A DNA stretch of 63,513 bases, counting the filler, from Hyphochytrium catenoides (taxonomy: Eukaryota; Protista; Hyphochytriomycota): NCBI GenBank assembly GCA_900088475.1. It is 7 parts of 7 records of this genome, joined end to end, with 100 filler letters (N's around TTAATTAATTAA, not from the genome) between each part and the next. Parts side by side here need not be neighbours in the genome. Positions count along the whole stretch, not along the records: positions 1 to 22,752 come from FLMG01001939.1; 6 more parts are not named here. The stretch is one strand, 5' to 3'. Of the stretch, positions 1-22,121 are shown piece by piece. Each line of letters opens with the position of its first letter. Within the stretch, counting starts at the first letter, position 1. A model generated the notes under the pieces. That model had not been told where the DNA came from. It saw nothing but the letters and a program-made list of their open reading frames with translations, and searched no databases. The position numbers and the translations under genes were made by a program.

Positions 1-647
1 TGGAGGGTGGAAGGTAAGGGACCCATAAAAGTACAGTGCTGTGTTTGATATAAAGGAATTAAGGGAAGAGAGCTCAATCTTCACAATGTCCTTTGGCGGG
101 TCAAAATGCCACGGTGCTCCAGGACAGGACAGGACAGTGCTGCTAAGCCCGTCCGCCTTAGCGCGTGTTGGATGTCAGCCCCATAACGGTCCTGCTTCTG
201 GATAGACCATCATTGTCATAGGTAGTTCTAGTAACATCCAGCAGGAAGGGGATATAAGCTCACGAGAAAGCAGTATCGCAGACCAGAGTCAATGATGGCA
301 ACAGCAAAGTAGGCCAGAAGGGAAAGAAGCTTACAACGAGAAGACACTATGCTTAGGTGTTGGATGAAGGCAGCGCATCGTCCACCGTCGCCTAGATCAG
401 GCATCACGTGCGCCTCAGTGGCGAATTGTTGCTTAATGCTATATGTCTTGTCGTCGTTGTTCATGACGGACTAAGTGGAAGCATAATCCTTACGCTTTAG
501 GATCTTCTTGTCGTTGTTCTTCCGTGCCCATTGTTGCTTAATGCTATGACGACAAACCTTCTCCTGACGTGTCGTTATGGTCTAATACCTTGCTCCTGGT
601 GACTTGGAACCGTGTTAGGGCCCTTTTAGGGGGCTTTTGGTTACTGC

Positions 648-2948
648 ATGCCCAACCATAGATTTCCGCGGCAACGCTGCCAAGGTCCTATGACTTCCTC
701 CACTACGAGTGCTCCCCTCTCTTCTGAGGGGGGGACAACCTTCTCCAGTTCATCGCCAAACACTTCTAACAATGGAAACCTCAAAGATGGAAAGCGTCAA
801 TCCTGGAGAAAGCTGATCTTTTCGAGAGACAAGCTGCATGTCCAACGTATCATCTTCTCCCTTCCCCGCTTTCATGTCCTTGGCTTCCTATGGGCAGTCA
901 TCGAGCTAGCCATCTTCATCGTGACTGCTGCGCAAACAGACTTTGAAGCTTTGGACACTGTAACATTGATGCTGAAATCGCGACTTACACAGCAAATTTT
1001 TCTCAATGAGAACGCACAGAGCATTCTTCGAGACTTAGACCAAGATACGATTGTCTCAATGGTATACGGCTCCTTTGGCCCTTCCTCTCAGTTTTGCGGA
1101 CCTCCAGCAGGCTCGCCGTACTCTATCTACATCAATGCTCATGCCTATTACACCATCAAGACAGCTAGAGCAGATGTTATGGCGCAGCAGCGAGACTTTA
1201 ATATGGCAGAGGAAAACGAAGAGTCCGAAAGAAGATTTGCAGATAATAGTTCTACCAGGTTTGGTTTGGATCACAGCCAAGAAGCCCTTAGTCGCTACGT
1301 ACTGCGACAGCTTCTCTGCAATAGGACAGAGCCGCTGATAGACCAGAGATACATTATGAGCAACGTCGGGCAGTCCTGCTCTGGCGCTGAGCTCTTGCTT
1401 GACATATCCAGAGATCTTGACATCTGTGAAAACACGGCAGACTATAATGTCCAACTTATTGTGGCAGGAACCAGAAATGTCTGCATCTTCTACTTTCATG
1501 GGTGGGATCCCGTTGTAGCACCAGAACCGGAGTGGACAACGACCTGCATCCATTTCGGCACTAAAGAATTGAAAAGGACTGAACTGCGGTGGATCTTCCG
1601 GCGACTCGAGGTGCTTTGGGATAGGTTTAGAGCCGCGGCTATGGCCTGGATACTACTCTCTGTCTTTATGCGCCTGCTCTATTGGTACAGGGTAGTTGAA
1701 GTCACACGCAGAAGCCTGGTGCACCTAAGGACGGAATGCCCTCAGACAAATCAATGGTCTCACTCGTTAGAAAGAAAATTAGGGCTTAGTGAGGCCGATT
1801 CGCGCCGCCGCCCTGTGAAGGCAACTGCCTCCGCACACGTAGTCACCATGAGAAGGTCCGAAAGGGCCATGACAGACATTTTAAACAACAGAATGAAGGA
1901 TTCAGTGCAAAACGTGAGGCTATCTGCTGAACTACGGACCTTCCTGACTGCCTCCTCTATAGGCATCGCTTGTGCCAACAATGACTCTTGGTATCTTGGT
2001 CTGTCCATTTTGAGGCAAATACTTGGGGGCCCTTATGTTGAGATGCTTCTGGCCTCGGCCGTGACTACCCCTACTGCAGCGTGGCAGGCCTTTGGGATAG
2101 TCATATACCATGAAGCCATCATTCAGGGCATCTTCTGGAGCCTCTGCCGGATCTTTCACAGGCAACCGCGATCGATGGAGGGCGTCATCGACGTTGGAGT
2201 TTTAGGCTATGTCTCAATGCTGTACTTGTCTATCAGCGTCCAGTCCTCACAGCTGTTCAATGTGGACATCTTAGGGTTGTTCAGAGTCACTAACTGGCTG
2301 ATATCCTCTATGTGGTGGATTATCCTGCCAGGCTGTGGGCCGGATGGGCCTTGCCTGTGGTCGAGAGGTGATATCGTTATTCACACTGTGACGGCCATCT
2401 ATATCTCCGCCTTTGCCGTAATAACGCAGACGGTTGTAAGTGCCTGGAGGAAAAGTCGCCGGAGAAAGGCAAAGGCGGTTCATCATAGCAGCTTTTCCGG
2501 CCAAGCACTGGAGCTGAGAAGTTTGAGGGAAGAAGAAAGACATTTTTTTGCCTCTCGGATGCGGCCACCCCCGCCGAGCTCATGGCTATATTTGGGAACC
2601 GTTGGTTGTCCTTCTTGCTGGTCGCAGCTGGTAAAGCAGCCCACTATGATTCCAGCTCTGGCTACCGATCTAAGGGATAAGAAAAAGCTGGCAGTGGATG
2701 TTGAGCCCACCTGCGCGGAGAAGCAGTCGGTAAAGCAGCATCACATCACCAGAAGTAGCGCTCTCGCAAGCACCAACGCTGGTGCTGCCAATGAATCAGC
2801 ATCATCATTAAAGGGCTGCTGTCTCTGGTATGCCTGCGATCACAGTGAGAGGAACGTAGACGACACCGCAACATCTCCAAACAACAACAAACAGCCCACA
2901 AAGCTAAGTAGCTATCGCTTCATGCCTCTCTCTCGTAGGAGTAACTAG
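648..2948 (+). CDS. Uncharacterised multipass membrane protein, family A paralog 1 (intact, intronless, 766 aa)
   Basis: Long uninterrupted ORF sharing blocks with three neighbours: PRFHxLGxLWAxIEL, CGPxxGSPY, LCNRxEPLxDQRY, SIGIACANND, AWQAFGIVIYHEA, DVGVLGYxS, RGDIVxH, WLYLGTVGCPxC, YRF. About 6 hydrophobic segments. Confidence 0.9.
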   Translation: MPNHRFPRQRCQGPMTSSTTSAPLSSEGGTTFSSSSPNTSNNGNLKDGKRQSWRKLIFSRDKLHVQRIIFSLPRFHVLGFLWAVIELAIFIVTAAQTDFEALDTVTLMLKSRLTQQIFLNENAQSILRDLDQDTIVSMVYGSFGPSSQFCGPPAGSPYSIYINAHAYYTIKTARADVMAQQRDFNMAEENEESERRFADNSSTRFGLDHSQEALSRYVLRQLLCNRTEPLIDQRYIMSNVGQSCSGAELLLDISRDLDICENTADYNVQLIVAGTRNVCIFYFHGWDPVVAPEPEWTTTCIHFGTKELKRTELRWIFRRLEVLWDRFRAAAMAWILLSVFMRLLYWYRVVEVTRRSLVHLRTECPQTNQWSHSLERKLGLSEADSRRRPVKATASAHVVTMRRSERAMTDILNNRMKDSVQNVRLSAELRTFLTASSIGIACANNDSWYLGLSILRQILGGPYVEMLLASAVTTPTAAWQAFGIVIYHEAIIQGIFWSLCRIFHRQPRSMEGVIDVGVLGYVSMLYLSISVQSSQLFNVDILGLFRVTNWLISSMWWIILPGCGPDGPCLWSRGDIVIHTVTAIYISAFAVITQTVVSAWRKSRRRKAKAVHHSSFSGQALELRSLREEERHFFASRMRPPPPSSWLYLGTVGCPSCWSQLVKQPTMIPALATDLRDKKKLAVDVEPTCAEKQSVKQHHITRSSALASTNAGAANESASSLKGCCLWYACDHSERNVDDTATSPNNNKQPTKLSSYRFMPLSRRSN

Positions 2949-4267
2949 CATAGGGCCACTATTCCCAAAGATGGTGAAAGAATGGAGTAGAAGGAGTGAT
3001 CTGATAAGTTTTGAGAAAAGTCTTGATCTATGACACATTGGCTATCTTCCCGTATGTTCTATGGGCGACTCCATGGCGCTCGCTTCGTGGCAAGATCTCG
3101 TCAGAAGATGCCATACTCCATGAGTTAGGGATCATCACCACCTCCTCGATCATTGGCAGGGGCAGCGGCGTTTCGGGAGTCAGGGGACCAAGGCACAGGA
3201 CGGAAGCCCCTTGGAACAATCATATAAAGGGACAAGGAGCTATCGGCGTAAGGAAAAAGGGGAGAGAGAGGAGTGAGGCCACGACGCAACGTGCCTGGTG
3301 CAGCAGGCGGCCGGAGTGGCTTGATGAACAAGTTGGCGAAGAGGAAGGAAGAAGGAGCGATGATGGGAGGAGGCAAGGGCCCCACGATACAGCCCTCCCC
3401 TCGGAGTATGTTGGGAATCTGTAACGGACGGGAGGGAGGGGAAGAGAGGAACAAGTGCACTGACAATGGAAACTGACGGGCCGGGCGGTTGGCTTGATGG
3501 CTACCGATGACGGAGCAGCAGGTGCACAAGACTAGGAGCCGTCGCAAGCCCCAGGCCAGGCAAGGGGCGACAGTCGTCCATAAGACCGAGATTATAAAGC
3601 AGAAGACCCTCCTAGAGTTCCCATCCGGTTAAAGGGTTACTCATCAACGGAGAGTAACCAGCAGCTACGCCCACAGCACCAAGGCTGGGCCGCCCTTAGA
3701 ACGATTTTGATGTTTGACAATGTTCCAAGGCCCTACCCATCACGTCCATTGCTCCTCTCTGTAATCCTTGTGTCTCGCACTTGAGACGACGGAACTATAG
3801 CTATTTGTCTAATGTTGGATGCGAAGCTACTTGTTGCTCTGATGTAACGACAACGCAGAAGGGCGTCAGCCTCCCTCTGCCAGTCTTTCTATACTTTGTC
3901 TTTCATTTGCTCCCTCTTCCAGTTGGTCCCCTCTTCTCTTTCCTAGTTCTTTTGTCTCTCGCTCAATCGTCATTGATCCTAGAAGCCCAAGCACCACCGG
4001 AGGGGCCTATCGAGCCGCATCCGCATCATCTTTCATTTGCAAGCGCCACAGCCCCAGCGCTATAATCTGCAAGGTTAGGCCCGATATCGCCCTTCAGAGA
4101 GGAACGTGACATGGTCTACTCTACCCAGCGGCTAGAGTCTATTCCACTTTGCCGCTGAGAGGGGATACGTCGATTGTCTTCACAGCTGGGTCGCTCTTGC
4201 CGCACTGCCTTCTCTAAAATAGCTGCAATAGCTGCAGTAGGGCTCTTACTATAGCCAGGACCTGCCA

Positions 4268-6644
4268 ATGCCATCCACGAAGATCCGAAGCTTTAAGAAC
4301 AATGGTACGCTAACAGAGCCACCAGTAGTCCATACCGCCGCTCCATCCTCCGCAACAGGGAGAATGCCAAATGATGGTGGTGAGCCGGTGAGGGGGAAGG
4401 ACTTGGGGCCTGATTGTGACGATAAGCAGTCCCAGCCCCAGCCCCTAAAGCGTTTACTTCTGTATCGAAACAAGCTGCATGTACAGCGTATCATCTTCTC
4501 CGTCCCTCGATTCCACTTTCTCGGCTTTCTTTGGGCTGTCATCGAGCTTGTCATCTTCTTCATTACAACTGCCCAGATGGACTTTGAAGCTCTCGACACT
4601 GTGACACTTATGCTGCGTCTGAGGGTTACTCAGCAAATCTTCGTCGACAAAGACGCTCAGAGCTTACTGGGAGATTATGAACGGGACACGATCGTCTCCA
4701 TGTCTCTAGGCTCTTTTCGTCCTTCTTCTGCCTACTGTGGGCCACACGTGAACTCTGGCTTTGCAAAGTACATTCGGGCACATGCGTTCGACGCTATAAA
4801 GGCGGGCAAGTACTGGAATGACCCGACAGGCGGCGGCGCCCTTCTGTCGGACCCAGACACTACGCTTTTGGCCCTTAGAAATAGCTTTGCGTTCGATGAG
4901 AAGCAAGAAGAGGTGAGGCGCCATATGTTGCAGCTGATGCTCTGCAATAGGTCGGAGCCCCTTATCGATCAGCGTTACATTCTCAGTAACATTGGACAAG
5001 AACGTACGGGCCCAGGTTTACTGCTTGATATCAACGGTGGGCTGGACCTTTTGCCAGCAGCCTGAGCAGTATAACTTCCAGCTCCTCGTTGCAGGAACCA
5101 GAAGTGTCTGCATTTTCTTCAACCGAGATAACTCGACTGCCATAGACAAAACCCTAGGCGTTGCTCCTGCATGGCCCGTGCCGGAGTGGGCAGTCATCTG
5201 CATTCATTTCGGCACGAGGGACCTCGTCAGAGAGGATTGCCAGTGGATCTTCAGGCGGCTTCGTGTGCTCTGGGACAGATTTAAAGCCTCAGCTCTAGCA
5301 TGGATACTATTGTCTGCTGCCATGCGGGTGCTTTACTGGTGGCGGATGGTTGAAGCCACCAAAAGAAGTCTGGTCCATCTGCGAACTGAGTGTACTGCTG
5401 AGCAGGACAGGCCGTTCATCATCGCACCCAACGGGACAAACGGATCTCGCCATCTTTCCCTTCAAAAAACACCTAAAGAAATGGCAGATGAGAGTCTTGC
5501 AGCCGCCAACAGGACCGTAGGGTCTTTCAGAAGAGGCAAGGAGAAAGAAACTCGAGGCACTACCATTCCCCATGCATTGTCCCCTAATAGGTTTTCAAGC
5601 GGAATGATCCAAACGTGGATGACTGCTGCTTCTATTGGCATTGCGTGCGCGAACAATGACAGTCTCTACCTCGCTCTTGCTGTCGTGCGGCAAATAGTTG
5701 GTGCTCCTTACGCAGAGATGCTTCTTGGCTCAGCCGTAACCACCCCGCTAGCTGCTTGGCAGGCGTTCGGCATTGTAATCTACCACGAGGCCATCATATT
5801 GCTCATCTTTCATGGTGTTGACCGTTTGCTGAGAGGGAGAAGGAGCGTGATAAACGGCGTCACGGACGTCGGTGTTCTTGGCTATTTCTCTATGCTCTTC
5901 CTCTGTCTGAGCGTGCAATCCTCCCAGCTCTTCAACATTGACGTTCTCTGGCTCTTCAGAACGACCAACGCCCTAAATGTCCCCGTTCGCTGGCTGATAC
6001 TTCCTGGTGCTAGCCCTGATGGAGCGTGTCTGTGGTCCAGGGGAGAGATTTTTCTCCACACCTTGGCCGCTGTGTACACTTCAGTCTTTGCCCTTCTAGC
6101 TCAGAGCGCCGTCAACTATTGTAGGCACAACATCATGATGTCCAGCTGCTGCCGTCATCCAAGAAGAGGAAGGAACATCGTGGTTGCCTCGACATCTGGT
6201 GATCATCAAATGCGGAGAGACAGCTCCACGTCTACCTGGTGGCTCTACCTCGGGACTATTAGCTGCCCATCCTGCAGCTGGCGGATTGTCACGCAGCCGA
6301 CACTCATCCCAACATCTCCCTCTTGTGCCACTGCCTCACTTGCCTGTGAAAAGGCCCCAAGGCCTTCAGCCGTCACTCAGTGTGACTTCCAAGCTTCCCC
6401 TACAAGGCCATCCAGCAGCCCCGGTGATCCACCGCTTGGAAACCATGAGAAAGACCACCAAGGACCTGAGATATCTTCGACTTCGAATTGCTGTCTCTCC
6501 ATTCCTTGCACACATTCACTACTATCTGAGGAGGACAATCAGACAGAGAAGAAGGTAAGGCAGACGTATAGTCGATATCGCTTCATCAGTACCAAGAGAG
6601 AGCCGCCTGTGAGACCAAGAACGGCCCAAGCAGCTAGGAGCTAA
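4268..6644 (+). pseudogene. Family A paralog 2, split by a +1 frameshift at about 5048-5051 (pseudogene or homopolymer error)
   Basis: ORFs 4268-5065 and 4992-6644 are the N- and C-terminal halves of a paralog 1 homolog. Removing one T from ctg gac ctt T tgc cag restores LDLCQQ (paralog 1 LDICEN). A conserved ectodomain Cys is Arg here (GQERTG vs GQSCSG/SQPCSKG/SQPCKG). Confidence 0.8.
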
Positions 6645-6992
6645 TGTTAGTTACATCATGGTACGACGCGGTTTAAGAACTAGAAGTACCGATCCTGTCT
6701 GATGGAAGCCTTTCTGCAGCGGAGTAGAGAGATCTAACTTATCTAATAAATAGCGTAGATGTATAGAAAGAACTGGGGTCAGGAGGAAGAAAAAGGCTGA
6801 GAGCATGGACATAGAGAAGCTGCTGGTACACCTCGCCCCGCTGTCCGCGCAGGATACCGAGCGCAACTCGCTTGAGAGATGAAAACCCCAGCTCAATGCT
6901 TCCTTCACCTGAAGAGTTATCTGGTCCCTCCTGCCGCCATCAGTATTGACTTCACTGGCAGGGCCAAAGCACCTGCTAAGCTACCAATATAA

Positions 6993-9328
6993 TCACCAGA
7001 AGAGGAGGTAGCTTCTCTTTATCCTAGGGAGTCCCCAGGACCCACCCGTCATTGCCAGGAAGCGATAGTTGTTGACCCTTTTTCCAGCCTCTCGCCTCTT
7101 CCTTGTCACTGCAGCGGGCGAGCAATATTTGCTACGCATGGTCCAAAGGCAGCACCTATTGCTCTCCTTCAAGCGTTTGTCTACCATTTCGGTGGACACA
7201 TCCTCCGTCGCCCTCGTGCCATCCTTGCCCTTACCTCTGCTACCGCAGGTAGCCCGTCATTCTGCTGGATAAACGTCGGCCGCTTTATGATAAAAGCGAG
7301 GCAGTGTGGACACCCTACAGTACCTAAGTAGAGCCATTGGTGGGTCACTTTGCATGTCTCCACCTCCATCTTGTCCTTATGCGGCCCTACAGCTGAAGAC
7401 CGTGCATCCCTTAACGCCTCTACTTTCTCATCATATATGCCCGGGCAAAAAAACCCTCGTCGGCCCTTCTTCTTTCTGTTGTCCCACGCAGAAAGACAGA
7501 AGGCAAGAAGAAGCTGCAGCAAGAGTGTAGCGCTTGCTGTGTAAAGAGCAGCAGCTGAGTGCAGGACAATGTCTCCGCGGATGTAAAGACATGGCCCGTC
7601 AGGTTCACAGTTTGGGAGAATGATCCACCAGAGCCAGGTGATCAGCGTGTTTGTGGCGCCGAAGAGGCAGAAGATGTCAAAGTTCACCATCTGCACTGAC
7701 TGAGTGGCGAGACACAGAAAGAGAAGAGACACGTAACCCAGCATCCCGACGTCTAAGATAGCAGGGACTAGGCGCTCTCTTGGAGAGTAGAACAGACGTC
7801 TTGCTCCCCTGAAGGACAGCTGGATGACGGCCTGGTGATACACCACCATACTGAATGCTTGCCAGCCAGCCAGCGGCGTAGTCACCGCCGAAGCGACGAG
7901 TACTTCGCCATAGACAGCACCAAACACCTGCCTCAAGACGGCCAGCACGAGGTACGCTGTGTCATTGTTTGCACAAGCAATGCCGAGAGACAGAGCGGTC
8001 AGACTGGTGGCCAACCATCCTCCCACTCTCTTTCTTTGTGACGCTGCTTTTCTAGGTAACGTCTCGTCCACCGCAGCTCTAGGCACTTGAACCACAGATA
8101 AAGACGGCTTCCGCTCCGGCAAGGACTGGTCCGTAGGAGAAGAAGAAGGTGGCAGGTTGGTCTCATGCGGGTGCAGATTGGGGACAGATGATAGAGAAGA
8201 AGAAGGACAGTCATGCCTCAGGTGCCATAAGCTCGCTCGCGCCACCTGGAAGACTGTGAGCCAGTAGGTCAGGCGCATAGCAATAGACAAGACAATCCAG
8301 ATGATGGCAGAGCTCCAGATTGCCTCCCATGCCACCTCTAAGCGTCGAAAGAGCCACTGAAAATCCTCTCTCTCCATATCTATCGCTCCAAACTGTATGC
8401 AAAGAACGGTAGCTCCTGTGGTCGCTCTATCTGAAGGCCGAAGAGCATACGTGTACAGGCAGACACTTGTCACGCCGGAGACTTCTAAGAGCGCCCCGTA
8501 GTTCTGAGGGTTAGCGCAGACGTCCAATTCCTGTACCGAGCGTATCGAGAGATTGGCCGCGCCCTTGCTGCACGGCTGTGAGAGGGCGCTCAAGACATAG
8601 CGCTCGTCAAAGATAGGCTGTGACCTCCTGCAAAAGAGAAGGTCTAAGAGTTCTCCGTCTATCTTGCCTCTCATCTCCCACAGCTGCAACGCGGCGTCAG
8701 ATGCTTCAGACGTGTCTTCTTTGTCTCTCTGGGGTAGCAGCGTACCGTCAATGGCCATCATTGCCGCGCTCTGTCTCTCTTCTATCGCCATCAGCGCCTG
8801 GCGGTTGATATAAACAAAGTACGGAGAGCCCGGTTCAGGGCCGCAATAGTCAGAAGACAGGGAAGAGAAGGCGCCTGAGGTGATAATCAACAATGACGTT
8901 TGCCCTTGTTCTTCCATGCTCTCTTCCTCATTCACGTGGCCAACGCCGCCTGTGGCTCCTGATCCTGTCTCTTCTTCCTTCCCTAACATTGCCTGTTGCT
9001 TGTGTCTGGACTCCAGCACCTCTCCTGCCGTGTCTAAGGACTGAAAAGAGTAATCTGTCTTGGCCAAAGCGAGAAGAAAGATGCCCAGCTCTATGGCCGC
9101 CCACAGGATGCCCAGGAAATGGAAGCGTGGAAAGGAGAGAGAAGGTCCCCGCTTTCTTCTCTTCACGCGAAGATTGTCCCTCTCAAACAGGAGTCTTCCG
9201 AGATTTTTTACAGCTTGAGAGGGGAGAGAGTGACGAGAGAGACTCTTGGGAGGATTCGCTCCTTGCTTCTTATCTGTTCCTTCTTCTCCTGCTGCGTCGT
9301 TGTCCTTACCCTGCTCTTGCTGCTGCAT
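6993..9328 (-). CDS. Family A paralog 3; C-terminal tail continues in another frame (frameshift at about 7200-7258)
   Basis: ORF 7181-9328 carries all family motifs through WLYLGTVGCPHC. The family tail motifs CCLW and NYRF lie in the overlapping ORF 6993-7199. Confidence 0.8.
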
Positions 9329-9377
9329 CGTTCACCTTCAAGGACGACAGACTTCGAGAGGAAGCAAGACGGACAGC

Positions 9378-9425
<48 letters not shown>

Positions 9426-9992
9426 TAAAGGCGAGAAGGGTTCGACAGTGGCCGAACACACTACGCCCGACAATAGTTCTGATGAAGAGAAGGACGATTA
9501 GAGAGAAAGAAAGAGAGAGTGAGAAGGAGAGAGAGAGGGAGAGAAGTGGGACGGGGGGCGCACGACCCCAAGCTTCTGTTCAATCACGCGCTCGGCTCAT
9601 TTACCCATCGTATCTATCCACTCCTTCTTCACTTTGCTGGGACAACAGTGACATGTTGCTGCTTCCATCATCGTGCCCTTGTCCCCTTCTCTTTCTCTTC
9701 TCTCCTTCATCTGCTCCCAAGAGCCGCGTTATCATGATGAGCAGTTCCCTTCTCTCTTCTCAGGAGGATGAACGAGGGGAAGGAGGGAGAGAAGGAGAAG
9801 AGAGATAAGAGAGGAGAAGAAGAGGAGAGAAGTAGAGGATGAGCGCCGCGAGAAGAGCTTTAAAAAAGAAAGGGAGAAGGAACACGTCAGGACGTCCACT
9901 GTGCCGCCCCGCGCCCCTCCCTCTTCGGATCATCCCCCTACAAGCTCCCCTCCTGCCTGTGGCCTTGGTCTCCCTCTCCCACTATCTTCCCA

Positions 9993-10043
<51 letters not shown>

Positions 10044-10114
10044 NNNNNNNNNNNNNNNNNNNNNNNNNNNNNNNNNNNNNNNNNNNNNNNNNNNNNTCCT
10101 CAAGTGGGACGAGT

Positions 10115-10145
<31 letters not shown>

Positions 10146-10810
10146 AGAGGGAGAGAGAGAGAGAGAGAAAGAAACAGAGAGACAGACAGAGAGAGAGAAG
10201 AAGGGAGAGAGAGAAAAAGAGAGAGAAGAAGAGAAAAGGAGAGAGAGTGAGGGACAAGCATCATTCGGCCTTTCTCCTGGCAGCTAGGTGGGAGGGGTCC
10301 CGCTAGTGCTATAGATGCACATAAGGGAGTGGAGCACGCAGGAGAGAGACGAGAAGATCCAATGGAGGACAGCGGCGGCCGCCAGCAGCAGCAGCCAAAC
10401 GGCGGGGCTCGATGCAGGCCACTATCTGCTGGTAGAATGGGAGGAGGAGCAGCTCTTTCATCTTTCTTGGACTATTACTGCCTACAATCAGAAGCAAGCT
10501 AGATTAAGAAGCAGCGAAAGGGACCTCTCAGACCACCAGAGGACGTGAGAGAGAGAGAGAGAGAGAGAGAGANNNNNNNNNNNNNNNNNNNNNNNNNNNN
10601 NNNNNNNNNNNNNNNNNNNNNNTAGGATGTCCTCTGTGTTAGCGATTAGACAGTCGTCGATTGATGGGTATATCTAAACCTGACTTGTTTCTTTCTCGGT
10701 ATTCTATGTTCTTGTTAGCGCTGCCTGTTGGTCCATAGGTGTAGAGATGTATAGAGACCAACTAAAGAAGAGAGCGAGAGTGAGAGAGAGAGAGACAGAG
10801 AGAAAGACTA

Positions 10811-10847
<37 letters not shown>

Positions 10848-10975
10848 TGAAGATAAAGGGGAGAATGATAGAGAGAGAGCTAACAATGTAAATAAGAAGC
10901 TGACATCTAGCTAACAAATAATGTGCAAGACTAGAGAAAATTTTTCCCCTCCCGTCTCGCTCACTCGGTGTCGTC

Positions 10976-13465
10976 TCAACTACCGTAAGGTTTCTGAGAG
11001 GAAAGAGTTAAGAAGTGATAGTGGCTGAACGCTATTGCTTCTTCTTCTTCTTTTCTTTGGTTTGTCTGCGCTGCTTCGCCTTTCTTCTCTTCCGCAGGCC
11101 CCTGATGCTTCTTCGCTGCAGGAGGACGGAGAGTCGGGACGCCCGAGGAGGAAGAAGAAGAAGGACATATCCTCCCGTTGGAGTTTGTCTTCTTCTTTTG
11201 CCTTACTCTCTCCTCCTCCGCCGCCACTTCTCCTTGTCCTTCCTCTCCACCCACCGTCGCTGCGCTCCATTGCTTGACAATCAACGCGCCACAGCGCGGA
11301 CAGCCCACCGTTCCGAGATAGAACCACCACCGTGCCGCAATAACCCCTTCCTCCGTCGTCTCTCCTCCCTTCATTCTCTTCTCTGCTCCTGAAGAACAAT
11401 GATCCTCGTTCGAGCGTGGAACCTCTCTCTCCTCTGGTCTTGCTTTTCCTTTTCTCTTTGTCATGAGGTGCACAGCCATTTGAAGAAACAGAGCAAAGAG
11501 AGAAGCCTCCACAGCTGAGACAGTGTGGAAGACAATATCTCCTCGGATCCAGAGGCCCACGCCCTCGGGCCCAGAGCTAGGCAGAAGGAGCCACCAGAGC
11601 CAAGAGATGATCCAGTTAGACAGCCTTACGATCCAAAGAAGGTCAATCTTAAGTAGGCGCGCACTCTGGGCAGTTGAACAGATGAGAAGGAGAGACACGT
11701 ATCCCAGCACGCCGACGTCAGTGATTGACGCAACGGCTCCCCATTTCCTTCTCTCTCTCTTCTCTCTCCTGTCTAACAGCCTCAGCCCATGAAAGAGCAT
11801 CATTATGACGGCCTCGTGATAGACGACGATCCCGCAGGCCTGCCAGGCCGCCAGTGGCGCTGTCATCGCCGCAGCAGTCGTGATCTCGCCGTAGGAAGCC
11901 CCTACAAGCTGCCGCAGCACGCCGAGCAGGAGGTAGACGGTGTCATTGTTGGCGCAGGCAATCCCAATAGAGGCCGCTGTGGCCACATCAGACAGGTCAG
12001 GAAGAGAGATACATGGCCCTTTGCCTGCACCTCTTCTCCTTGGTAGTGCCACCTGAGAGGAGGAAGAGAGATTCATGGGAGAGGGAAGACCAGGGGACCG
12101 ACCGGGGTCGAGAGGAGGGGAAGAGAGGAAAGAGGAAGGCACCGTTTTCGCAAGGAGAATAGTATGCTGCTTTCCCTCCTGCTCCTTACCTCTAGGAAGT
12201 GAGGATGCAGAGGCGACAGCAGAAGAGACAGTCTGCATTTTCTCTTTCTCTTCTATGGGATGAGATAGAGATGGGCCGCACGGAGAGGAAAGAGGGAGAG
12301 AAGAGTCACTCTGCTGTATGCTTCCCGTGCACTCTGTCCTGAGATGAGTGACGCTCCTCCTGGTTATTTCTATGACTTTTACCCAGTAGATGATCCTCAT
12401 CAAAAGAGAGAGAAAGATCCAAGACAGCGCAGAGGCTTTCATGAGCTTCCACACTCTCTCCAGACGGCGGACAACCCATCGCAGCTCTCTTCTCTCCAGA
12501 TCTCTCTTGCCAAAGCGCACACACGGAGTCGTGGCAACGCCTAGCGGGTCCTCTCTTGAGAAGCCAAAGACACAGACGTTCCCTATGCCTGAGACGAGCA
12601 ATTGGAAGACATGTGCCTCAGGGTCCGTGCAAAGGCTTAAGCTCTTGCTAACGTTAGTGAAAAGCTCAAGCCCTTTGCACGGCTGAGACAGAGCGCTAAG
12701 GACGAATCTTTGGTCAAAGAGAGGCTCTGTTCTATTGCAAAGAATCATCGCGAGATACTGACGATCAAGCTGCTCAATAGCTTCTTCTCCCTCTCTCTCT
12801 CTCCCTTCTCTTCCTTCTCCTGTCTCTCTCTTCTCCTCAATGGTACTGGTCGTAAAGCCAGCAATCGGGCCATTCTTTGTGACGAGCCCATACAGTGCCT
12901 GGGCGTTGAGATAGTTATAGTACGGAGTCCCAGGCTGTGGGCCGCAGTTGTCTCCTCCTTGACGTGTCCCTTGCGTCAGCGAGACGATAGAGTCTCTCTT
13001 CATATCAAAGACACGCTCTTCCTTCTCTGTCAAAAACGTCTGCTGGTCTGTCCAGGACTTCAGCAGCTGTGTCGGCGTGTCTAAGAACTCAAAGGAGTAG
13101 TCCATTTGCACCAGCGCCAGGAGGAAGACAGCCAGCTCTACGACTGCCCAGACGGCTCCAAGGAGGTGGAACCGGGGAAGAGAGATAGGGATCGCCTCTA
13201 CATGCAACTTCTCCTTCAACAGAATAAGTCCTCTCCATCCTCCTCTTCGTGAGGTCCTCTTCTTTCTCCTGCTAGAAGAGAGAAGGTCTGTTTGTCCCGT
13301 CCTAGGGAGAGATGTGAGAGGAGAGACAGCAGCAGGCACAGAAGAAGAGGGCAGGAGAGGGATGGCAGTGGTGGTAGGAGGAGAAGCCGCGGGAGATGAC
13401 GAAGAGAGACTCTTTAAGGTTCTTTCTCGTCGCTGCTCTCCCTTCTTTTCGTCAATCTCTGCCAT
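10976..13465 (-). CDS. Family A paralog 4 (intact, intronless, 829 aa)
   Basis: Uninterrupted ORF with PRFHLLGAVWAVVEL, CGPQPGTPYY, LCNRTEPLFDQRF, SIGIACANND, YHEA, RGDIVFH, FYLGTVGCPRC and a terminal YHF. Confidence 0.9.
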   Translation of the reverse strand: MAEIDEKKGEQRRERTLKSLSSSSPAASPPTTTAIPLLPSSSVPAAVSPLTSLPRTGQTDLLSSSRRKKRTSRRGGWRGLILLKEKLHVEAIPISLPRFHLLGAVWAVVELAVFLLALVQMDYSFEFLDTPTQLLKSWTDQQTFLTEKEERVFDMKRDSIVSLTQGTRQGGDNCGPQPGTPYYNYLNAQALYGLVTKNGPIAGFTTSTIEEKRETGEGREGREREGEEAIEQLDRQYLAMILCNRTEPLFDQRFVLSALSQPCKGLELFTNVSKSLSLCTDPEAHVFQLLVSGIGNVCVFGFSREDPLGVATTPCVRFGKRDLERRELRWVVRRLERVWKLMKASALSWIFLSLLMRIIYWVKVIEITRRSVTHLRTECTGSIQQSDSSLPLSSPCGPSLSHPIEEKEKMQTVSSAVASASSLPRGKEQEGKQHTILLAKTVPSSFLSSPPLDPGRSPGLPSPMNLSSSSQVALPRRRGAGKGPCISLPDLSDVATAASIGIACANNDTVYLLLGVLRQLVGASYGEITTAAAMTAPLAAWQACGIVVYHEAVIMMLFHGLRLLDRREKRERRKWGAVASITDVGVLGYVSLLLICSTAQSARLLKIDLLWIVRLSNWIISWLWWLLLPSSGPEGVGLWIRGDIVFHTVSAVEASLFALFLQMAVHLMTKRKGKARPEEREVPRSNEDHCSSGAEKRMKGGETTEEGVIAARWWFYLGTVGCPRCGALIVKQWSAATVGGEEGQGEVAAEEERVRQKKKTNSNGRICPSSSSSSGVPTLRPPAAKKHQGPAEEKKGEAAQTNQRKEEEEAIAFSHYHFLTLSSQKPYGS

Positions 13466-13959
13466 CTTCTCCTACTCCTGCCACGCTCTCGTCACGATGG
13501 TGCCTGCATTCTTCGTGTCCGAGGCTCTTTCCTAGAGACACATGGAGCGCAAGCTGCAGGTCTGAAGAGAAGCCTGGCGCCGCAGATAGAACTTTCTTTG
13601 CTCGTTATAGCAAGCTCCTCGCTTGTCGTTCTGCGTCCCTCAAATGATCATGTGTCTGTCCCTTAAACGCTACTCTGAGTGCTGCCTTGCTCTCCTGCTA
13701 CTCTCTCGCTACCTTTCTCCCGTTTCGTTTGCTTTTCTCTCCTTCTGTCTCTCTCCCCTCATCTCCTACGGTACCTCTTTACGGGGAGAAGAAGAAAAAG
13801 AAGAAGCGGCGACAACGGGTTGTAGGTCGCTCCTCTCTCTTAGCCCGGAGCCCAAGAAAGCGTTCCATGCCTGTGCCGCTGGTATAAGCTAGGCCGAGTT
13901 GAAAAGCAACGTGAGAACAAGGGCGCCGACAAGAAAGAGAGAGAGAGACAGAGAGAGAG

Positions 13960-14014
<55 letters not shown>

Positions 14015-17000
14015 AAGAGGGAGAAAGAGAGAGCAAAAGAGAGAGAGAGAGAGAGAAAGACAGAGGAGGAACCCCAAGTGTTTATAGAGGGTGGATGGGT
14101 TAGCCGTGAACCTTGGGCCAAGTGGAAAGAGTGAACAGCGGGGAGAGAGGGTTGTTGGGCCCACCCGTCCTCTGGGGGCGTTACGATCTGTGAGAGTGTA
14201 ACGCCTTTGCTCCTCAGTGTAGTGCACTACTTCTGTCCTCCTTGACTCATAGCCGTTCTCTTCCTCTCTCTTCCTCTTGCGTTAGCGCCAGTGGGCTCTA
14301 TCTGTAAGGAAAGCCTGCAGTCTCTGAGGCTGCTGTGTCAGAGCTAATCGCCTAAAGCGAGAGAGGAGAAGTCACAGATAAAAATTAGCCAGCGGAGAGC
14401 CGCATGATGATATCTTCTTCGCGGTCGGAGGTGGGCGACGGGAGATTGTTGAGATGGCCGAAGAGGTAAGAAGGAGAAGGGAGAATCAGACAGAAAACAT
14501 AGGATTGCATATCCAGACAAAAACGAGCAGAGGCGGGAAGATGAAAATGAGTTTGAGAGGAAGTGGTATGATCACCCCGAAGAGGAATAGAGTACATCAT
14601 GTAGAGGGAACAATGGTTAACGAGGGCTGATCAAGATCCTCCATCAACACCAGAAGAGAGAGGCGGGGCCCAAGAGAGTTAATAACAACTGGAGATATAT
14701 ATAAAAGAGTGAGAGCGAGCATTTATATATGGAGAGAGAAAGAGGGACAGATTCATGTGAAGCGGGACTAGAGTCGTCTGGCGCGCCGGAAGACTTATAG
14801 TTTCCACCTAGCGGCGAGCGGAATTTGCTGAGGTCGTCCCGGTGAAGAGTGACATGAGAGGAGGACGGACAGTTATGCTGTCTTCTCTACCTGTTCCCTT
14901 TGTCTCTACCTTGTCTTNNNNNNNNNNNNNNNNNNNNNNNNNNNNNNNNTCTTCTCCTCTTCCATCTTATCGCTTCACCATGGGATCAGGTTCGCTCACT
15001 CCTCTTTGGGAAAAGAAGAACCCGTTGGAAGATCACCGCCCGCTCTCGCATGGCTCTTCTACTTCAGTCACTCCAACAACCTTGTTTTAAGAAAGCAGCT
15101 ATCCTGCAGGGGATGATGTCTCTTTTCTTCACGAACAGACACCAACGGAAGGATAAACATCCAGCTATTGTCAAGATAATATTATGTTCTATTATGGCAT
15201 CTATGCTTTCTGACCTCAGGTCTTCTCTCCTAGCCGTCTATGTAGCGTAGACTATTATGAGGATGATGGCCGTCACGAGGACGGCCACCAACATCAGCAC
15301 TTTGACCACCTTTAGAACCTGCTCCGCTTGGTCCTTGAAGTCCGCCGTCGCCGCCCGCTGCTCCTCCTCCACTGCGTAGGCATTGCCTGTTACGCGTCCC
15401 ATTCCGCACTTCATCCTTTTAGCCCTTTATCGGCGATGGTGTCCTCGCTTCCAACTTTGCTGGTATTCTCCTTCAGAGTTTGATTTTGATATGATTGTCT
15501 TGACAACTGATTCCGGTGACTTCTGGTCCTCTGCGTCAGTCTAGTAGAACTCTGGAATCAGGTGAGAAGACAGTCGCTCTCCACTCCAGAGGGACGAGAG
15601 GTAATCCAGGGGATGATGAGAATGAAGGGCAAGAAAGGTAGCGTCGCGTGGATGGCGTGCCTGCTGAGACTAGTAGAGCCAAGAGCGGAAGGTGGATAAT
15701 GGGGCCCTAAAAGGGATAAGTGGTGGCTTGAACTGTTGCAAGAGGCGGCAAAACAAAAGCGTCGGGCGACGCAAACTGAGCGCTTTCGGAAAAGATGAGA
15801 TTGACTCAGAGGCCGAGTGCGAGAGGAGTGGGAAGAGATAGAGGTAGAGAGAGAGAGGGTGCGGTAGAAGAAGGGACGTCAGCCACAAGACAGAACCAGA
15901 GAGAAGAGATCCACCACCGGTAATGAAGAGAAGGGCGTCGTAATGACAGGAAACAGCCCGTGAGACTGACAGTTAGGCGTCAAAGATAGAGTGAGAGGAG
16001 TGTCGAGTGGCGATGGAAGCCAAGCCATCGTCGCTGCTGCTCCCGCTGCTTGCCCTGCTGCCCAGTGCTGGAGACTGCCCGACAGCCGCGAGAGAGAGGG
16101 AGCAGAGGAGCCGACAGAGAAAGGTAAATAAGGTCAAGTTGAGGTTGGACAATCGCGTCCTTTATTAAGGGCACACAGGAAGGCTGCGACCATGTTGTTA
16201 TCACCTGTTTGACGGTGTTAGCACTAGTGATTATAGGTAAAATGAAGGTGTATTCGTTGCCGTTAGCTTTGTTCTAACGGCTCCCTTTGTCAACAACCAG
16301 CCTCCTCCTTCCTCCTGAATCATCATCATCATCATGCATTATGATGATTGATGATTCTTCTTGTTGGGTTCCTCGCTGCTGGCGGCCTGTCATCATCGTT
16401 ATCAGCCATCATGCAGGCAGCCGGCTGGCCCGCGGGTGCTCCTCTACCTCCTTCTTCGATCTTCCTTTCTTCTGCTCCTAGCCCAGCCCTTCTTCTCGTC
16501 CTCTTTGTCCTCCTCTTGATTCCTCCTCCTCCTCCGCGTATCATTTTTGATCATTACTATCATCTTTTGGTGATAGTAGAAGTAGTGGTGTGCTGCTGCT
16601 GCGGTGATGAAACTAAGGATAAATCGCTTCTTGGCTCGGTGGTGGTGTTAAGGCGAAGGAGAAGCAGCGGGTAGCAGATCCCGCAGCAGGAGGTGAAGTT
16701 GATGAATAAGTGGAATACGTAAAGGTCATAATATGACCCAGTCAATATTCTATTATCTCCACTGATCGATGCACAAGCAGGCAATGCACTTCTTCCTCTC
16801 ATTCTTCTCTTCTTTTCTTCTATCTGTTATATTTGATTTAAACTTTTCTCACACTGAACTTCAAAATTTTTGCCTCCTCCTCCTCGTCAACAAGAAGGAA
16901 CATTGTTGCATGCTCTCCTCTCCCTCAACAGCGCTTTTGTTAATGCATAAATAATTACGTACTCTGCTGATCCTAATCTCAAGTGTAGCAGGTCTTTATA

Positions 17001-20000: not shown

Positions 20001-20171
20001 TGTCTTCTCTGTCAGGGCAAGACAACTGACATAGAAACCCTGCCCATAGACTATGCAGCCAAGCATACACCTGTAGACTGTTCTCCATCTCTCTCCTTCA
20101 GGCAGTCTCTGCCTACGGCGCCGGTGGCACATCCTGCTGCCATCTTTATAGAGAAAAGAGAGAAAGGCGCA

Positions 20172-22121
20172 ATGAGAGAGATCGAGAGAAAGATGACCGT
20201 CAATGGCTTTTTCCAGGGCTTGTTTCAGCGCAAGCGTTCAGACTCAGACGACAGCATGGATAGCTTCTCTGCTTCTCAATACGAGCCGCCAGGTAATAGC
20301 GCCTGGCCTTCATCTCCTTCTCGTGCCTTCTCAGTCCGACCGATATACTGGCCCGTCTGCTGTGTCGTACTCTCTCTCCCGGTCGGTATCTCTTAGTAGA
20401 GATCGTCTCTGGACTGATGACTGATCCTTCTTCCTTTCCTTGTCTTTTTTTCTTAGAGGGTGAGCTCTTCCGTCCAAGAAGCAGCAATCACAGCGACAAT
20501 AGCTGCATCTCCTGTCTCTCGCCCTCCTCTCACAACCGCTGGATGAGGCGTATGTTCTACGTCCTGCCCGAACATGTGAACGAGGTGAAAAGTCTGTTAG
20601 AGCGCTCATTGAAGCTGAAGGAAGAAGGGATGCAGCACCATGTCTACCTGGACAACACGGATAGTGAGCTCTTCCAGGCCAGAGTTAGTGGCGCGGAGAT
20701 GTCTCCTCTTGTCAGGCTGAGTTGGAATAGGTAAGGAAAGAGAAGGAAGAAACTTTATGGGACAGATCTGTGTTTATCTCGTCTCTTGTCCCGCATGTGC
20801 CCCCTGGGCAGAGCTCTGAGAGTCTCTATCTCTTCTCATACGAAACTTGCTCTGTCTTGCTTTTCTATGTACCAAGCTAGCTCACTTTGTGGGCCCTGTC
20901 TTCTCCTCTCCTGTGTCGCTGTGTCTGACTATGTCTCTTTATTCTCTCGATAGATATTGCCGGAAAGGCGAGATGAACCTAGAGATTGAGACCTATCATA
21001 AGCGCCAGCTCTGTGAGGTTGTCACGCATAAGATCTCCTCCTGCAATGGCAAGGCTATTCTTCGGGGCAAAGTGCCTAACTTCATCAACATGTCGGAGGC
21101 CATAGAGAATGTGTTCAAGGCCAAGTCACTCGAGCCGGTAGTGATGATGGAATATTGGCGCCAACAGTATGAGAAGAAGGCATCGGATGGGGAGCTGACG
21201 GTCAGCGTCTTCTTGGATGAGAACTTCCGCTGTACGCCCAACATAAAGTGCTCGCATATTGGGAAGTTGGAGCCTGCGGCGCCAGACAACCAGACAAGGC
21301 AGTTTCCTTATGCCCTTCTCTCTCTCTATCAGGTCATTGATGCGGCGAACAATCAGGTGTGTCTCAATTCCTTTCATAGACTTCTTGTCCTTCTTGAGCG
21401 CGCCTTCCTTACCTTGTCCTTTCTCTTCTCTCTTATATAGCTGCTGAGCTCGCTGCTAGACAGTGGCATGATGATCGAAGTCTCTTGTGAGTTCCACAAG
21501 TACATCGCCTCCTACGCGAAGCTCAACGGAGTTCCAGACGCCGTCCAGATGCGTCTCATGCCTGCTTGGGTTTCTATGAGCTGGGAGGAGATAACAGAAA
21601 GCATAGAAGAGGGGGAAGGAGAAAGTCGTGGACTTTCACTCTCTCTTTCGAGGAGCCGGTCAGGAAGAGGCTCCCGCTCTGCCCGGAGCAGTAGGAACTC
21701 TAAGACTGACCAGCGCAGCTCTGTCTCCAGCTTCTCTCTCTCAGAACCGAGAAGGACAAAGTCAGCATTTCAGAGGCTCTTTAAGAAGGAGAAGACACAG
21801 GGAGGACAGAGAGGAAAGCAGCATCTCTCACGTCTTGGAGGCGTCCAGAACGTTGTAAACAATGCGAATGGGGAAGATATGCTTCTGCAGACGCCTCGCT
21901 CTGACAGGGCGAGACAGTGGGATACTGCGGGTGAGCTGCACTATGGAGATAGTATGGGAGACAGTGTTCCAGCTCGTCTCTCTTCTCGCACGCCGACTGT
22001 GCCTCTCTCTATCCCACGGGCCAAATCCTCAGAGAAGATCAATCAGCTTCTAGGAAGCTTTCTGCCCAAGTCCAGACAGCCAGAGGGCGTCAGCAGACGC
22101 GTTCTCGCTCAAGTTTGCTGA
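20172..22121 (+). CDS. VTC (polyphosphate polymerase-like tunnel) domain protein, degenerate; 4 exons
   Basis: Spliced model at about 20172-20292, 20458-20730, 20954-21357 and 21441-22121. Motifs RRMFYVLPEHVNEVK, VYLDNTDSELFQARV, VRLSW, PVVMMEYWR, SVFLD, FPYALL and FHKYI are colinear with Vtc4 TTKYWVH, IYFDN, RLRWY, PVVRSFYNR, RISLD, FPYAVLEVK and FSKF. Confidence 0.75.

Follow-up and report, generated by a model that had tools for sequence, protein, structure and literature searches.

The tandem genes at positions 648 to 13,465 of this Hyphochytrium catenoides DNA raise two questions: whether four ORFs without a recognizable name encode a real membrane protein family and, if so, what such proteins may do. 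The initial annotation had described them as intronless paralogues of an unrecognised multipass membrane family, and had proposed a sensory receptor or ligand-gated channel system. Throughout this work, the window is the whole stretch of DNA that was analysed (63,513 nucleotides, filler included).

Organization of the gene cluster

Four paralogues in the order + + - - were recovered where they had initially been placed, and tblastn returns exactly four copies in the examined piece, with no further fragment. The features of the cluster are as follows:

648..2948, + strand: Paralog 1 (P1), intact ORF, 766 aa
4268..6644, + strand: Paralog 2 (P2), ~791 aa, frame-broken at 5048
7181..9328, - strand: Paralog 3 (P3), intact ORF, 715 aa
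10976..13465, - strand: Paralog 4 (P4), intact ORF, 829 aa
10044..10096, no strand: assembly gap 1, in the P3-P4 spacer, between (TC)24 and (GA)n
10573..10622, no strand: assembly gap 2, in the P3-P4 spacer, after (GA)13

Three of the four copies (P1, P3 and P4) are intact, and the chance probability of a 715-codon ORF is about 1e-15. P1 and P2 share 49% protein identity, every other pair 36-38%, and approximately 95 residues are invariant across the four-way, end-to-end protein alignment. The paralogue ORFs can be aligned over their whole length without invoking an intron in any of P1-P4, which can indeed be called intronless. The neighbouring genes had been described as intron-rich housekeeping genes; one recognizable neighbour, a VTC-domain gene, does carry a canonical GT-AG intron of ~220 nt, but it is the only such neighbour within the examined piece.

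Both assembly gaps sit in dinucleotide microsatellites and no ORF crosses them, the gap region lying 716 nt upstream of the P3 start codon and 354 nt past the P4 stop codon. As the two gaps fall in the P3-P4 spacer, the adjacency and orientation of P4 rest on scaffolding. The spacers are rich in (GA)n, and the proteins carry low-complexity inserts, features reminiscent of coccidians. An Rfam search of the examined piece gave no match, and telomere-type heptamer repeats are absent from the window.

A frameshift in the second paralogue

P2 had been taken for a single ORF. Instead, it is split into a pair of ORFs, 4268-5065 and 4992-6644, that are read in different frames, and the break amounts to one surplus base at 5048, within a CC/TTTT run:

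4268..5047, + strand: P2 N-terminal part, 260 codons, covering the N-terminus, TM1 and the start of the ectodomain
5048..5048, + strand: one-base frameshift, also present in the contig of run X2 (record 15)
5049..6644, + strand: P2 remainder, 531 codons in the +1 frame, with all family invariants retained

The contig from X2, an independent sequencing run, passes 5048 without an indel and hence carries the same break, which is therefore not merely an error of this assembly. A micro-intron at the frame change was ruled out: the only GT..AG pairs near 5048 span 21-33 nt, all of them multiples of three in length, and their removal would delete a conserved cysteine. In run X2, the remainder of P2 shows two more 1-base gaps (5698 and 6248) and ~2% mismatches. 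A 486-nt contig of the soil relative (X4 record 18), matching positions 4884-5370 and thus overlapping this site, shows one single-base gap. Because of the frameshift at 5048, a lost ectodomain cysteine and these additional frameshifts and mismatches, P2 looks like a copy in early decay.

An orphan family under purifying selection

The claim that the family is unrecognised holds strongly, as all sequence searches were empty with the exception of one near-identical orthologue. No Pfam family was matched by any copy at E<=1 or E<=10, and no NCBIfam family at E<=10. When 1.84 billion representatives were searched exhaustively with a profile HMM, P0001 was the sole relative retrieved, a 97%-identical orthologue of P1 located on a soil-metagenome contig (L001). 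Word-index searches with the whole protein, with the TM core, and at fragment length with core alignment returned P0001 or nothing. None of the pattern matches obtained by scanning JGI metagenome and IMG/VR contigs was confirmed, and no sequence of a soil metatranscriptome aligned to the cluster. Profile searches of the PDB with the whole family and with the core yielded chance matches only, all at E>1 (carbonic anhydrase, E=3.2; carboxypeptidase, E=1.2). In the ESM Atlas, P1 scored 0.95 to oomycete 'transmembrane protein' clusters, a match of low recognition value; P3 did not reproduce it, its best Atlas score being only 0.64, and the lead, which speaks neither for nor against any reading, was dropped. 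The leads obtained with P3 (TMEM117, 0.64; DC_STAMP, 0.59; WLS-like_TM, 0.54) are all in the range that the tool itself calls 'a lead only'.

Contig L001 is 95% identical to the cluster DNA and collinear with it, intergenic DNA included. Coding DNA differs from L001 by 2.0-2.9%, with in-frame indels only; flanking non-coding DNA differs by 5.9-6.7%, with many indels. Purifying selection was found for P1 (dN/dS against its orthologue = 0.37, p=0.0013) and for the N-terminal part of P2 (dN/dS against L001 = 0.15, p=0.00016). The ORFs are real protein-coding genes that are selectively maintained. Between paralogues, synonymous sites are saturated (pS ~0.75), so that the duplications must be ancient.

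In this regard, intronless orphan genes beside an intron-containing neighbour, one of them frameshifted, could also be thought of as mobile-element ORFs, as ORFs of a giant virus integrated into the genome, or as non-functional relics. We regard such an origin as extremely improbable, since IMG/VR holds no relative, the four-gene cluster is bounded by no terminal repeats (just microsatellites), GC3 is uniform over the copies (0.56-0.59), the core is conserved while dS between copies is saturated, and both purifying selection and collinearity, intergenic DNA included, are seen with a related soil organism. Taken together, the four genes very probably constitute a real orphan membrane protein family which, as judged from its sequences, is old and lineage-restricted, without a detectable relative in known families.

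Predicted architecture and topology

Hydropathy and alignment uphold the prediction that these are multipass membrane proteins in which intramembrane polar residues are conserved and the ectodomain bears cysteines. The segments of P1 are the following:

876..941, + strand: TM1, residues ~77-98, the most hydrophobic segment by hydropathy
942..1622, + strand: ectodomain, residues ~99-325, with conserved Cys 150, 224, 244, 260, 279 and 300
1623..1742, + strand: TM2 and an invariant H-L-R-x-x-C segment, predicted cytosolic, residues 326-365
1743..1931, + strand: variable TM2-TM3 loop, K/R-rich and of low complexity
1932..2447, + strand: polar helical core, residues 429-600, five predicted helices
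2583..2618, + strand: C-tail motif W-L-Y-L-G-T-V-G-C-P-x-C, invariant in 4/4 copies
2913..2924, + strand: Y-R-F-M near the C-terminus, of Y-x-x-hydrophobic form, common to P1, P2 and P4 and missing from P3

TM1 of P1 is preceded by a K/R-rich N-terminus and an invariant LPRFH motif, and is directly followed, on the predicted lumenal side, by a conserved acidic motif, D-x-F-E-x-L-D-T. The ectodomain cysteines number six in P1, P3 and P4 and five in P2, where the third is replaced by R, as first described. They are widely spaced, in a way that suits disulfides better than zinc sites. A conserved sequon (NR[TS] in the family, NRT in P1) follows the second cysteine. The TM2-TM3 loop varies in length from about 60 to 150 aa by paralogue, the shortest being the 63 aa of P1. 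Within the core, P1 carries the motifs IACANND, RQ, Y.E, TTP..WQ, YHE, DVG.LGY.S, QS, D, N, P.[DE]G and RG[DE]I..H, and those that had been singled out at the outset (IACANND, RQ, Y.E, YH[EQ], DVG.LGY.S, QS, N and RG[DE]I..H) are all invariant in the four-way alignment. No internal duplication was found in the core (hhalign, E=0.53 over 8 columns), and the proteins have no S4-like, voltage-sensor-like arginine ladder.

Seven hydrophobic helices are predicted in total. The chain is rich in K/R before TM1, before TM3, at residues 500-513 and in the first 18 residues beyond the last helix (5-7 K/R, 0-1 D/E), and poor in K/R after TM1 and at residues 454-466, 535-541 and 560-575. This charge distribution favours an arrangement with both N- and C-termini inside. 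In line with this notion, the N-terminus lacks a signal peptide and is K/R-rich ahead of TM1, beyond which the chain turns acidic, and the tail after the last helix (~100-230 residues, depending on the copy) opens with 5-7 K/R, which indicates a cytosolic location. The distribution of K/R together with hydropathy favours six spans with cytosolic termini and a putative re-entrant pore helix with filter between the last two spans. Helix 541-559 of P1 is the shortest, is Trp-rich and has the lowest hydropathy (1.25); with both termini inside and seven predicted helices, this helix and the P-x-x-x-P-[DE]-G loop are most likely re-entrant, the helix dipping into the membrane from outside without crossing it. 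A 7- or 8-span topology is a possible alternative, although eight spans would require the 41-residue helix 464-504 to form a hairpin.

AlphaFold2 models of full-length P1 (pLDDT 32.8) and of its core, residues 296-668 (pLDDT 40.0), are both of low confidence; they put helix boundaries at the same places, and in one model the TM3 helix is interrupted precisely at N444-N445-D446.

Divergence by domain and the receptor hypothesis

The original proposal was that these proteins are sensory receptors or ligand-gated channels whose ectodomains diversified for different ligands and which possibly form heteromers. Local expansion to four old paralogues agrees with it, and four distinct subunits would suit a heterotetramer. 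Additionally, the non-synonymous difference per site (pN) between paralogues is higher in the ectodomain (0.31-0.49) than in the core (0.25-0.33). The values for the N-terminus, the loop and the C-tail, however, are 0.55-0.70 (0.56-0.70 for the loop). Divergence is thus greatest in the N-terminus and the TM2-TM3 loop, as first described, and in the C-tail, and not in the ectodomain, which keeps a conserved scaffold of cysteines and motifs. In the comparison with the orthologue, no other long segment is as constrained as the ectodomain (omega 0.12, from 3 non-synonymous and 7 synonymous changes). The most divergent segments are all predicted to be cytosolic and disordered, and the fact that variation concentrates there and not in the ectodomain weakens the idea of a diversified sensory receptor. 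Accordingly, the pN and omega comparisons give no sign of a ligand-diversifying ectodomain. Four copies, one of which is broken, do not make an expanding repertoire within the examined piece, nor is there similarity to any receptor or ligand-gated channel family. On balance, we consider this reading quite unlikely.

Particular receptor and channel classes were rejected as well. For insect OR/GR-like 7TMIC proteins there is no 7tm_6 or 7tm_7 match, and the tail is long and of cytosolic type instead of a very short C-out end. For GPCR-type receptors there is no 7tm Pfam match, and the N-terminus points to N-in and not to an extracellular position. Cys-loop, iGluR, P2X and ENaC/ASIC proteins gave no profile match, and at least six helices are predicted here versus 4, 3+1, 2 and 2, respectively.

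Likeness to known membrane proteins and possible function

In polycystins (TRPP/PKD2) and mucolipins (TRPML), the large domain is located between S1 and S2. The cluster proteins resemble these channels in layout, without being members of either family. As in TRPP/TRPML, the termini would be cytosolic, and a large lumenal or extracellular domain, of ~200-230 residues, disulfide-stabilised and glycosylated, would follow the first TM helix and cap the transmembrane core (PMC7054860). P1 agrees with this arrangement, in layout only, by its 225 residues between TM1 and TM2, six Cys and the NR[TS] sequon. Further likenesses lie on either side of the last helix, which is preceded by a possible re-entrant helix and an acidic Pro/Gly loop and immediately followed by a K/R-rich segment with Trp in first position; another is a tyrosine-type sorting motif in the tail. 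Unlike TRPP/TRPML, however, the family shows no sequence similarity to these channels (no PKD_channel or Ion_trans match at E<=10, no PDB profile match), its disordered TM2-TM3 loop of 60-150 residues contrasts with the short S2-S3 linkers of TRP channels, and its linker before the putative pore helix is only ~6 residues long.

Four old, distinct paralogues could also, by analogy, supply the four subunits of one pore, as CatSper1-4 are four distinct subunits in one channel. In contrast with CatSper, the family has no voltage-sensor-like arginines, and shared assembly is purely hypothetical; the frameshift of P2, seen in no fewer than two data sets, speaks against a complex in which all four subunits are obligatory.

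The layout that we propose for the family is as follows. A K/R-rich cytosolic N-terminus would lead into TM1 and a lumenal or extracellular domain of ~225 residues with three disulfides, probably N-glycosylated. TM2, the invariant H..x..C segment and a disordered cytosolic loop would come next, followed by a compact core of ~170 residues, built of helices and crowded with invariant N, D, E, R, H and Q. The tail would be cytosolic and would bear an invariant CPxC knuckle as well as a sorting-type motif of Y-x-x-hydrophobic form. The core would form an ion- or solute-conducting pathway, as a channel or transporter subunit, and the ectodomain would sit on top as a structural or regulatory cap. 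Such a function is plausible from topology alone, and we advance it tentatively, at somewhat less than an even chance; a pore-loop channel specifically is unlikely. Low pLDDT values of both AF2 models speak against the channel proposal, as does the lack of PKD_channel, Ion_trans or transporter Pfam matches even at E<=10. Neither an internal repeat such as carriers often have nor an S4-like arginine ladder was found, the linker from the fifth helix to the putative re-entrant helix is, at ~6 residues, shorter than a pore turret would be expected to be, and an intramembrane enzyme could make equally good use of the many invariant charged residues.

This last point bears on a different reading, in which the family is a very divergent member of a known non-conducting fold, such as a Wntless/GOLD-7TM cargo receptor, an intramembrane enzyme, or a protein of fusion or adhesion that resembles DC-STAMP. 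Wntless/GOST proteins have one N-terminal helix, a large disulfide-bonded lumenal domain and then a helical bundle, which matches TM1, the large cysteine-rich domain and the helices of the family, provided that its core holds seven spans. Seven or eight hydrophobic helices are predicted, the invariant charged residues would serve an active site (D/E/H/N catalysis), the acidic D-x-F-E-x-L-D-T motif would lie on the lumenal side, and the weak P3 leads in the Atlas name DC_STAMP, WLS-like_TM and TMEM117. Those scores nevertheless stay within the lead-only range, that for WLS-like_TM being at chance level, and there is no Pfam match at E<=10 to the named families, WLS-like_TM and TMEM181_GOLD among them. 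Moreover, only six hydrophobic helices are predicted after TM1 instead of seven, an odd span count in that part fits poorly with the positive-inside pattern, and a cargo-receptor bundle would need far fewer invariant charged residues than the core contains. A non-conducting fold thus appears doubtful, if worth keeping in view.

Within the conducting proposal, the core may alternatively represent a previously unseen class of pore, with its own fold or pore architecture, a six-cysteine ectodomain of a new type as its gate and a distribution restricted to poorly sampled soil-associated eukaryotes. Its pathway would be built from the discontinuous IACANND helix, YHE, DVG.LGY, the Trp-rich re-entrant helix, the P-[DE]-G loop and RGDI..H. 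Its likelihood is low, about that of the pore-loop channel.

Orphan membrane families are common in under-sampled protists, and our finding is a well-documented lead, not yet a discovery. If the organism is parasitic, a lineage-restricted surface or organellar membrane protein without a host homologue would be of practical interest. If the core conducts or transports, these genes would represent a membrane transport family that escapes all current profile libraries, with a compact set of invariant polar residues directly open to mutation.

Genomic organization of the cluster

A tblastn search with all copies as queries recovers four paralogues (P1-P4) of an orphan multi-pass membrane protein family in the piece of the window that carries the cluster (1-22752, G+C about 50%), and no further family copies there. 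Of the four paralogous genes proposed in the initial annotation, P1, P3 and P4 are complete, while P2 is split across two frames. P1 and P2 share 49% identity, and each other pair 36-38%. Five ORFs of at least 250 codons lie between 648 and 13465; ORFs of this length cannot be ascribed to chance, the probability for one of 715 codons being about 1e-15.

Family genes and assembly gaps
648-2948, + strand: P1, complete ORF of 766 aa
4268-5065 and 4992-6644, + strand: P2, two overlapping ORFs in different frames, jointly one paralogue
7181-9328, - strand: P3, complete ORF of 715 aa
10044-10096, no strand: assembly gap 1 (N run) in the P3-P4 spacer, between a perfect (TC)24 and a long impure (GA)n
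10573-10622, no strand: assembly gap 2 (N run) in the P3-P4 spacer, after (GA)13
10976-13465, - strand: P4, complete ORF of 829 aa
14918-14949, no strand: assembly gap outside the cluster, N run right of P4
19532-19609, no strand: assembly gap outside the cluster, N run right of P4

Gap 1 begins 716 nt from the P3 start codon (9328), and the P4 stop codon (10976) lies 354 nt past gap 2; since no family reading frame spans a gap, frame continuity across the gaps is not at issue. P4 and everything to its right are joined to P1-P3 through scaffolding alone, and the repeat strand switches at gap 1, from (TC)24 to (GA)n, so that the join there calls for caution. The spacers are full of long (GA)n/(TC)n microsatellites (9372-9440, 9996-10251, 10547-10572, 10769-10879 and 13932-14065), which border both gaps of the cluster and also lie just upstream of the P3 and P4 start codons. 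Shorter ORFs of 155-229 aa, at 1056-1553 (-), 8893-9501 (+), 9119-9808 (+) and 9839-10306 (+), are antisense to P1, overlap the 5' end of P3 or fall in the P3-P4 spacer; the last three, placed in purine-rich microsatellite, look like by-products of composition and not genes.

Only one neighbour can be recognised, a gene at about 20417-22121 (+) that encodes a VTC domain (polyphosphate polymerase type) and is spread over three or more ORF pieces that differ in frame (Pfam VTC matches, E=5e-4 and 2e-5). One or more canonical GT-AG introns interrupt it (one at about 20733-20951; donor AG|GTAAGG, acceptor with a pyrimidine tract and AG), which marks the host as a eukaryote that has spliceosomal introns; possession of a VTC gene also makes an animal improbable. 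To the right of P4, nearly 7 kb (13466-20300) hold no ORF above 150 aa and no Pfam match among the scanned ORFs, and represent either a long spacer or a gene of short exons. A tandem repeat (22327-22678; 92-nt unit, 3.8 copies, 83% matches), every unit of which holds a (CT)n tract, extends to the end of the piece.

An orphan family under long-term constraint

The proposal of a new family is borne out by the searches: there are no family matches in Pfam (E<=10), NCBIfam or PDB sequence profiles, and the family profile, run by exhaustive hmmsearch against 1.84 billion cluster representatives, returned a single protein, the orthologue P0001 (764 aa), 97% identical to P1. Nothing new came from word-index searches with whole P1, with its core region or, at fragment length, with the core alignment, and scans of JGI metagenome contigs and IMG/VR were negative. 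This lack of relatives refers to annotated or gene-called public sequences, outside of which lie unannotated eukaryotic assemblies and the proteins of this genome itself. In the ESM Atlas, P1 scores 0.95 against oomycete membrane-protein clusters, a match of low recognition value, and P3 reaches at best 0.64, against scattered unrelated families; the oomycete lead was held unsupported.

The gene for P0001 lies on L001, a soil-metagenome Logan contig of 7231 nt. This contig matches window 18-4896 collinearly (94.75% identity), and the match takes in intergenic DNA as well as the first 210 codons of P2. The organism of the window has a sister lineage, some 5% divergent, that inhabits soil or passes through it. 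The contig (1-2361) also reaches 2.3 kb past the left end of the piece, where no ORF above 124 aa and no recognisable gene were seen.

Substitutions against this contig amount to 1.96% in P1 and 2.86% in the P2 part, versus 5.9% and 6.7% in two non-coding stretches, and coding indels are limited to two of 3 nt each, versus 35 and 46 gap columns in the non-coding stretches. In this regard, purifying selection is detected in both genes compared, with a dN/dS (Nei-Gojobori) of 0.37 for P1 (25 non-synonymous, 20 synonymous; binomial p=0.0013) and of 0.15 for the P2 part (6 non-synonymous, 12 synonymous; p=0.00016). Between paralogues, synonymous differences per site are saturated (about 0.75), and non-synonymous ones range from 0.10-0.26 around TM1, 0.25-0.33 in the core (the polar helical part after the TM2-TM3 loop) and 0.31-0.49 in the ectodomain (between TM1 and TM2) to 0.55-0.70 in the N-terminus, TM2-TM3 loop and tail. 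The duplications are therefore old, with every copy constrained for most of that time, and P1-P4 are shown to be real, old and conserved genes that are orphans in sequence.

A disrupted copy and variation between sequencing runs

When aligned with P1, P3 and P4, P2 follows its first frame to 5047 and the +1 frame from 5049, which places one surplus base at 5048, within a CC/TTTT run; an intron as the cause of the frame change was ruled out. In X2, one of two independent sequencing runs, a contig of 919 nt (record 15, depth about 330) spans 4602-5517 with a 3-nt insertion at 4769 as its only gap, and thus carries the same frameshift. A further X2 contig (record 16, 5529-6452) has 18 mismatches, one 3-nt insertion and one-base gaps at 5698 and 6248, which would disrupt the core-coding part of P2; a contig from the other run, X1, is gap-free over 5751-6452. 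A small contig of the soil relative that covers 4884-5370 has one base fewer than the window; should the absent base be 5048, P2 would be intact in the sister lineage. P2 has lost one ectodomain cysteine, yet its N-terminal part was strongly constrained in the past. In this species, P2 may be a copy that was inactivated recently or is decaying.

At P1 codon 5 (window 662), one base is absent in about half of the contig depth (X1, 21.7/41.3; X2, 230/439), which could be an artefact of contig ends or could reflect another haplotype, frameshifted right at the beginning of P1; an in-frame Met is found downstream, at codon 16. X1 and X2, both labelled as the same species, disagree at many single sites over 648-6644, with each other as well as with the window, and two alternative X1 contigs cover 2871-3059 with 0 and 11 differences. 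This points to heterozygous or mixed samples, or else to an assembly made from a different isolate.

Conserved features and predicted membrane topology

A five-way alignment of the paralogues and P0001 contains about 95 invariant columns, among them all the motifs listed in the initial annotation (IACANND, RQ, Y.E, YH[EQ], DVG.LGY.S, QS, N and RG[DE]I..H) and the following additional ones.

Further invariant motifs
LPRFH, before TM1
H-L-R-x-x-C, after TM2
T-x-P-x-A-x-W-Q
P-x-x-x-P-[DE]-G
W-x-Y-L-G-T-x-x-C-P-x-C, in the tail

The six ectodomain cysteines noted earlier (150, 224, 244, 260, 279 and 300 in P1) are all present in P1, P3 and P4, and P2 has five, its third being an arginine. An NR[TS] sequon immediately follows the second cysteine in P1, P2 and P4.

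AlphaFold2 with a shallow alignment yielded pLDDT values of 32.8 for full-length P1 and 40.0 for core 296-668. At this low pLDDT both runs place the same helices (P1 numbering: 73-95, 311-362, 427-459, 461-504, 510-537, 541-559 and 568-605), with helix 427-459 interrupted in one run exactly at N444-N445-D446. Alignment-averaged hydropathy agrees with seven segments, the weakest being 541-555 (1.25), and hhalign finds no internal repeat in the core. Over the four copies, K/R residues are abundant before TM1 (4-9), before TM3 (1-6), at 500-513 (3-8) and in the 18 residues after the last helix (5-7, with 0-1 acidic), and scarce after TM1 and at 454-466, 535-541 and 560-575. The positive-inside rule would thus assign the variable loop, 500-513 and both termini to the cytosol, which the chain at 513-598 would then leave and re-enter just once. 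The simplest solution would be that the short Trp-rich helix 541-559, together with the Pro/Gly/acidic loop that follows (with a Cys pair in P1 and P3), forms a re-entrant element on the outer side, giving a predicted six full spans. Eight spans, with helix 464-504 as a hairpin, or seven, with the C-terminus outside, are possible alternatives to this six-span arrangement.

Proposed function

Invariant Asn, Asp, Glu, Arg, His and Gln residues crowd the core. Such polar density is unusual in purely structural or ligand-binding bundles and typical of ion/solute pathways or intramembrane active sites. We tentatively consider that the core could act as a channel- or transporter-like unit capped by the ectodomain, a reading that is a guess because function is argued here from architecture; a pore-loop channel in particular is less likely still. 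The invariant H..C after TM2 and the CPxC of the tail could jointly bind metal or form a cytosolic redox switch, and P1, P2 and P4 each carry a Y-x-x-hydrophobic motif close to the C-terminus, which may point to sorting through adaptors.

Polycystin and mucolipin TRP channels carry a lumenal domain atop the membrane core (PMC7054860). The family resembles them in the large disulfide-type domain directly after the first helix, the inferred cytosolic termini, the possible re-entrant helix and acidic loop before the last helix, and the basic stretch opening with Trp after it, but differs in that its TM2-TM3 loop is long and disordered and that a very short linker precedes the putative pore helix. 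All profile tests failed, and TRPP/TRPML membership is unsupported.

The idea that a variable ectodomain points toward sensory diversification is weakened by our results: compared with the orthologue, no long segment is more constrained than the ectodomain (dN/dS 0.12), its cysteine and motif scaffold is kept across paralogues, and the hypervariable parts are low-complexity segments predicted to be cytosolic. An obligatory four-subunit complex is likewise disfavoured, because P2 is broken.

P1-P4 make up a genuine orphan family of membrane proteins with clear limits, and the evidence that selection has long acted on it is good. Its channel- or transporter-like architecture is plausible but unproven. 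On present evidence the family is of moderate, not high, interest, and merits pursuit with a deeper alignment or better structure prediction.
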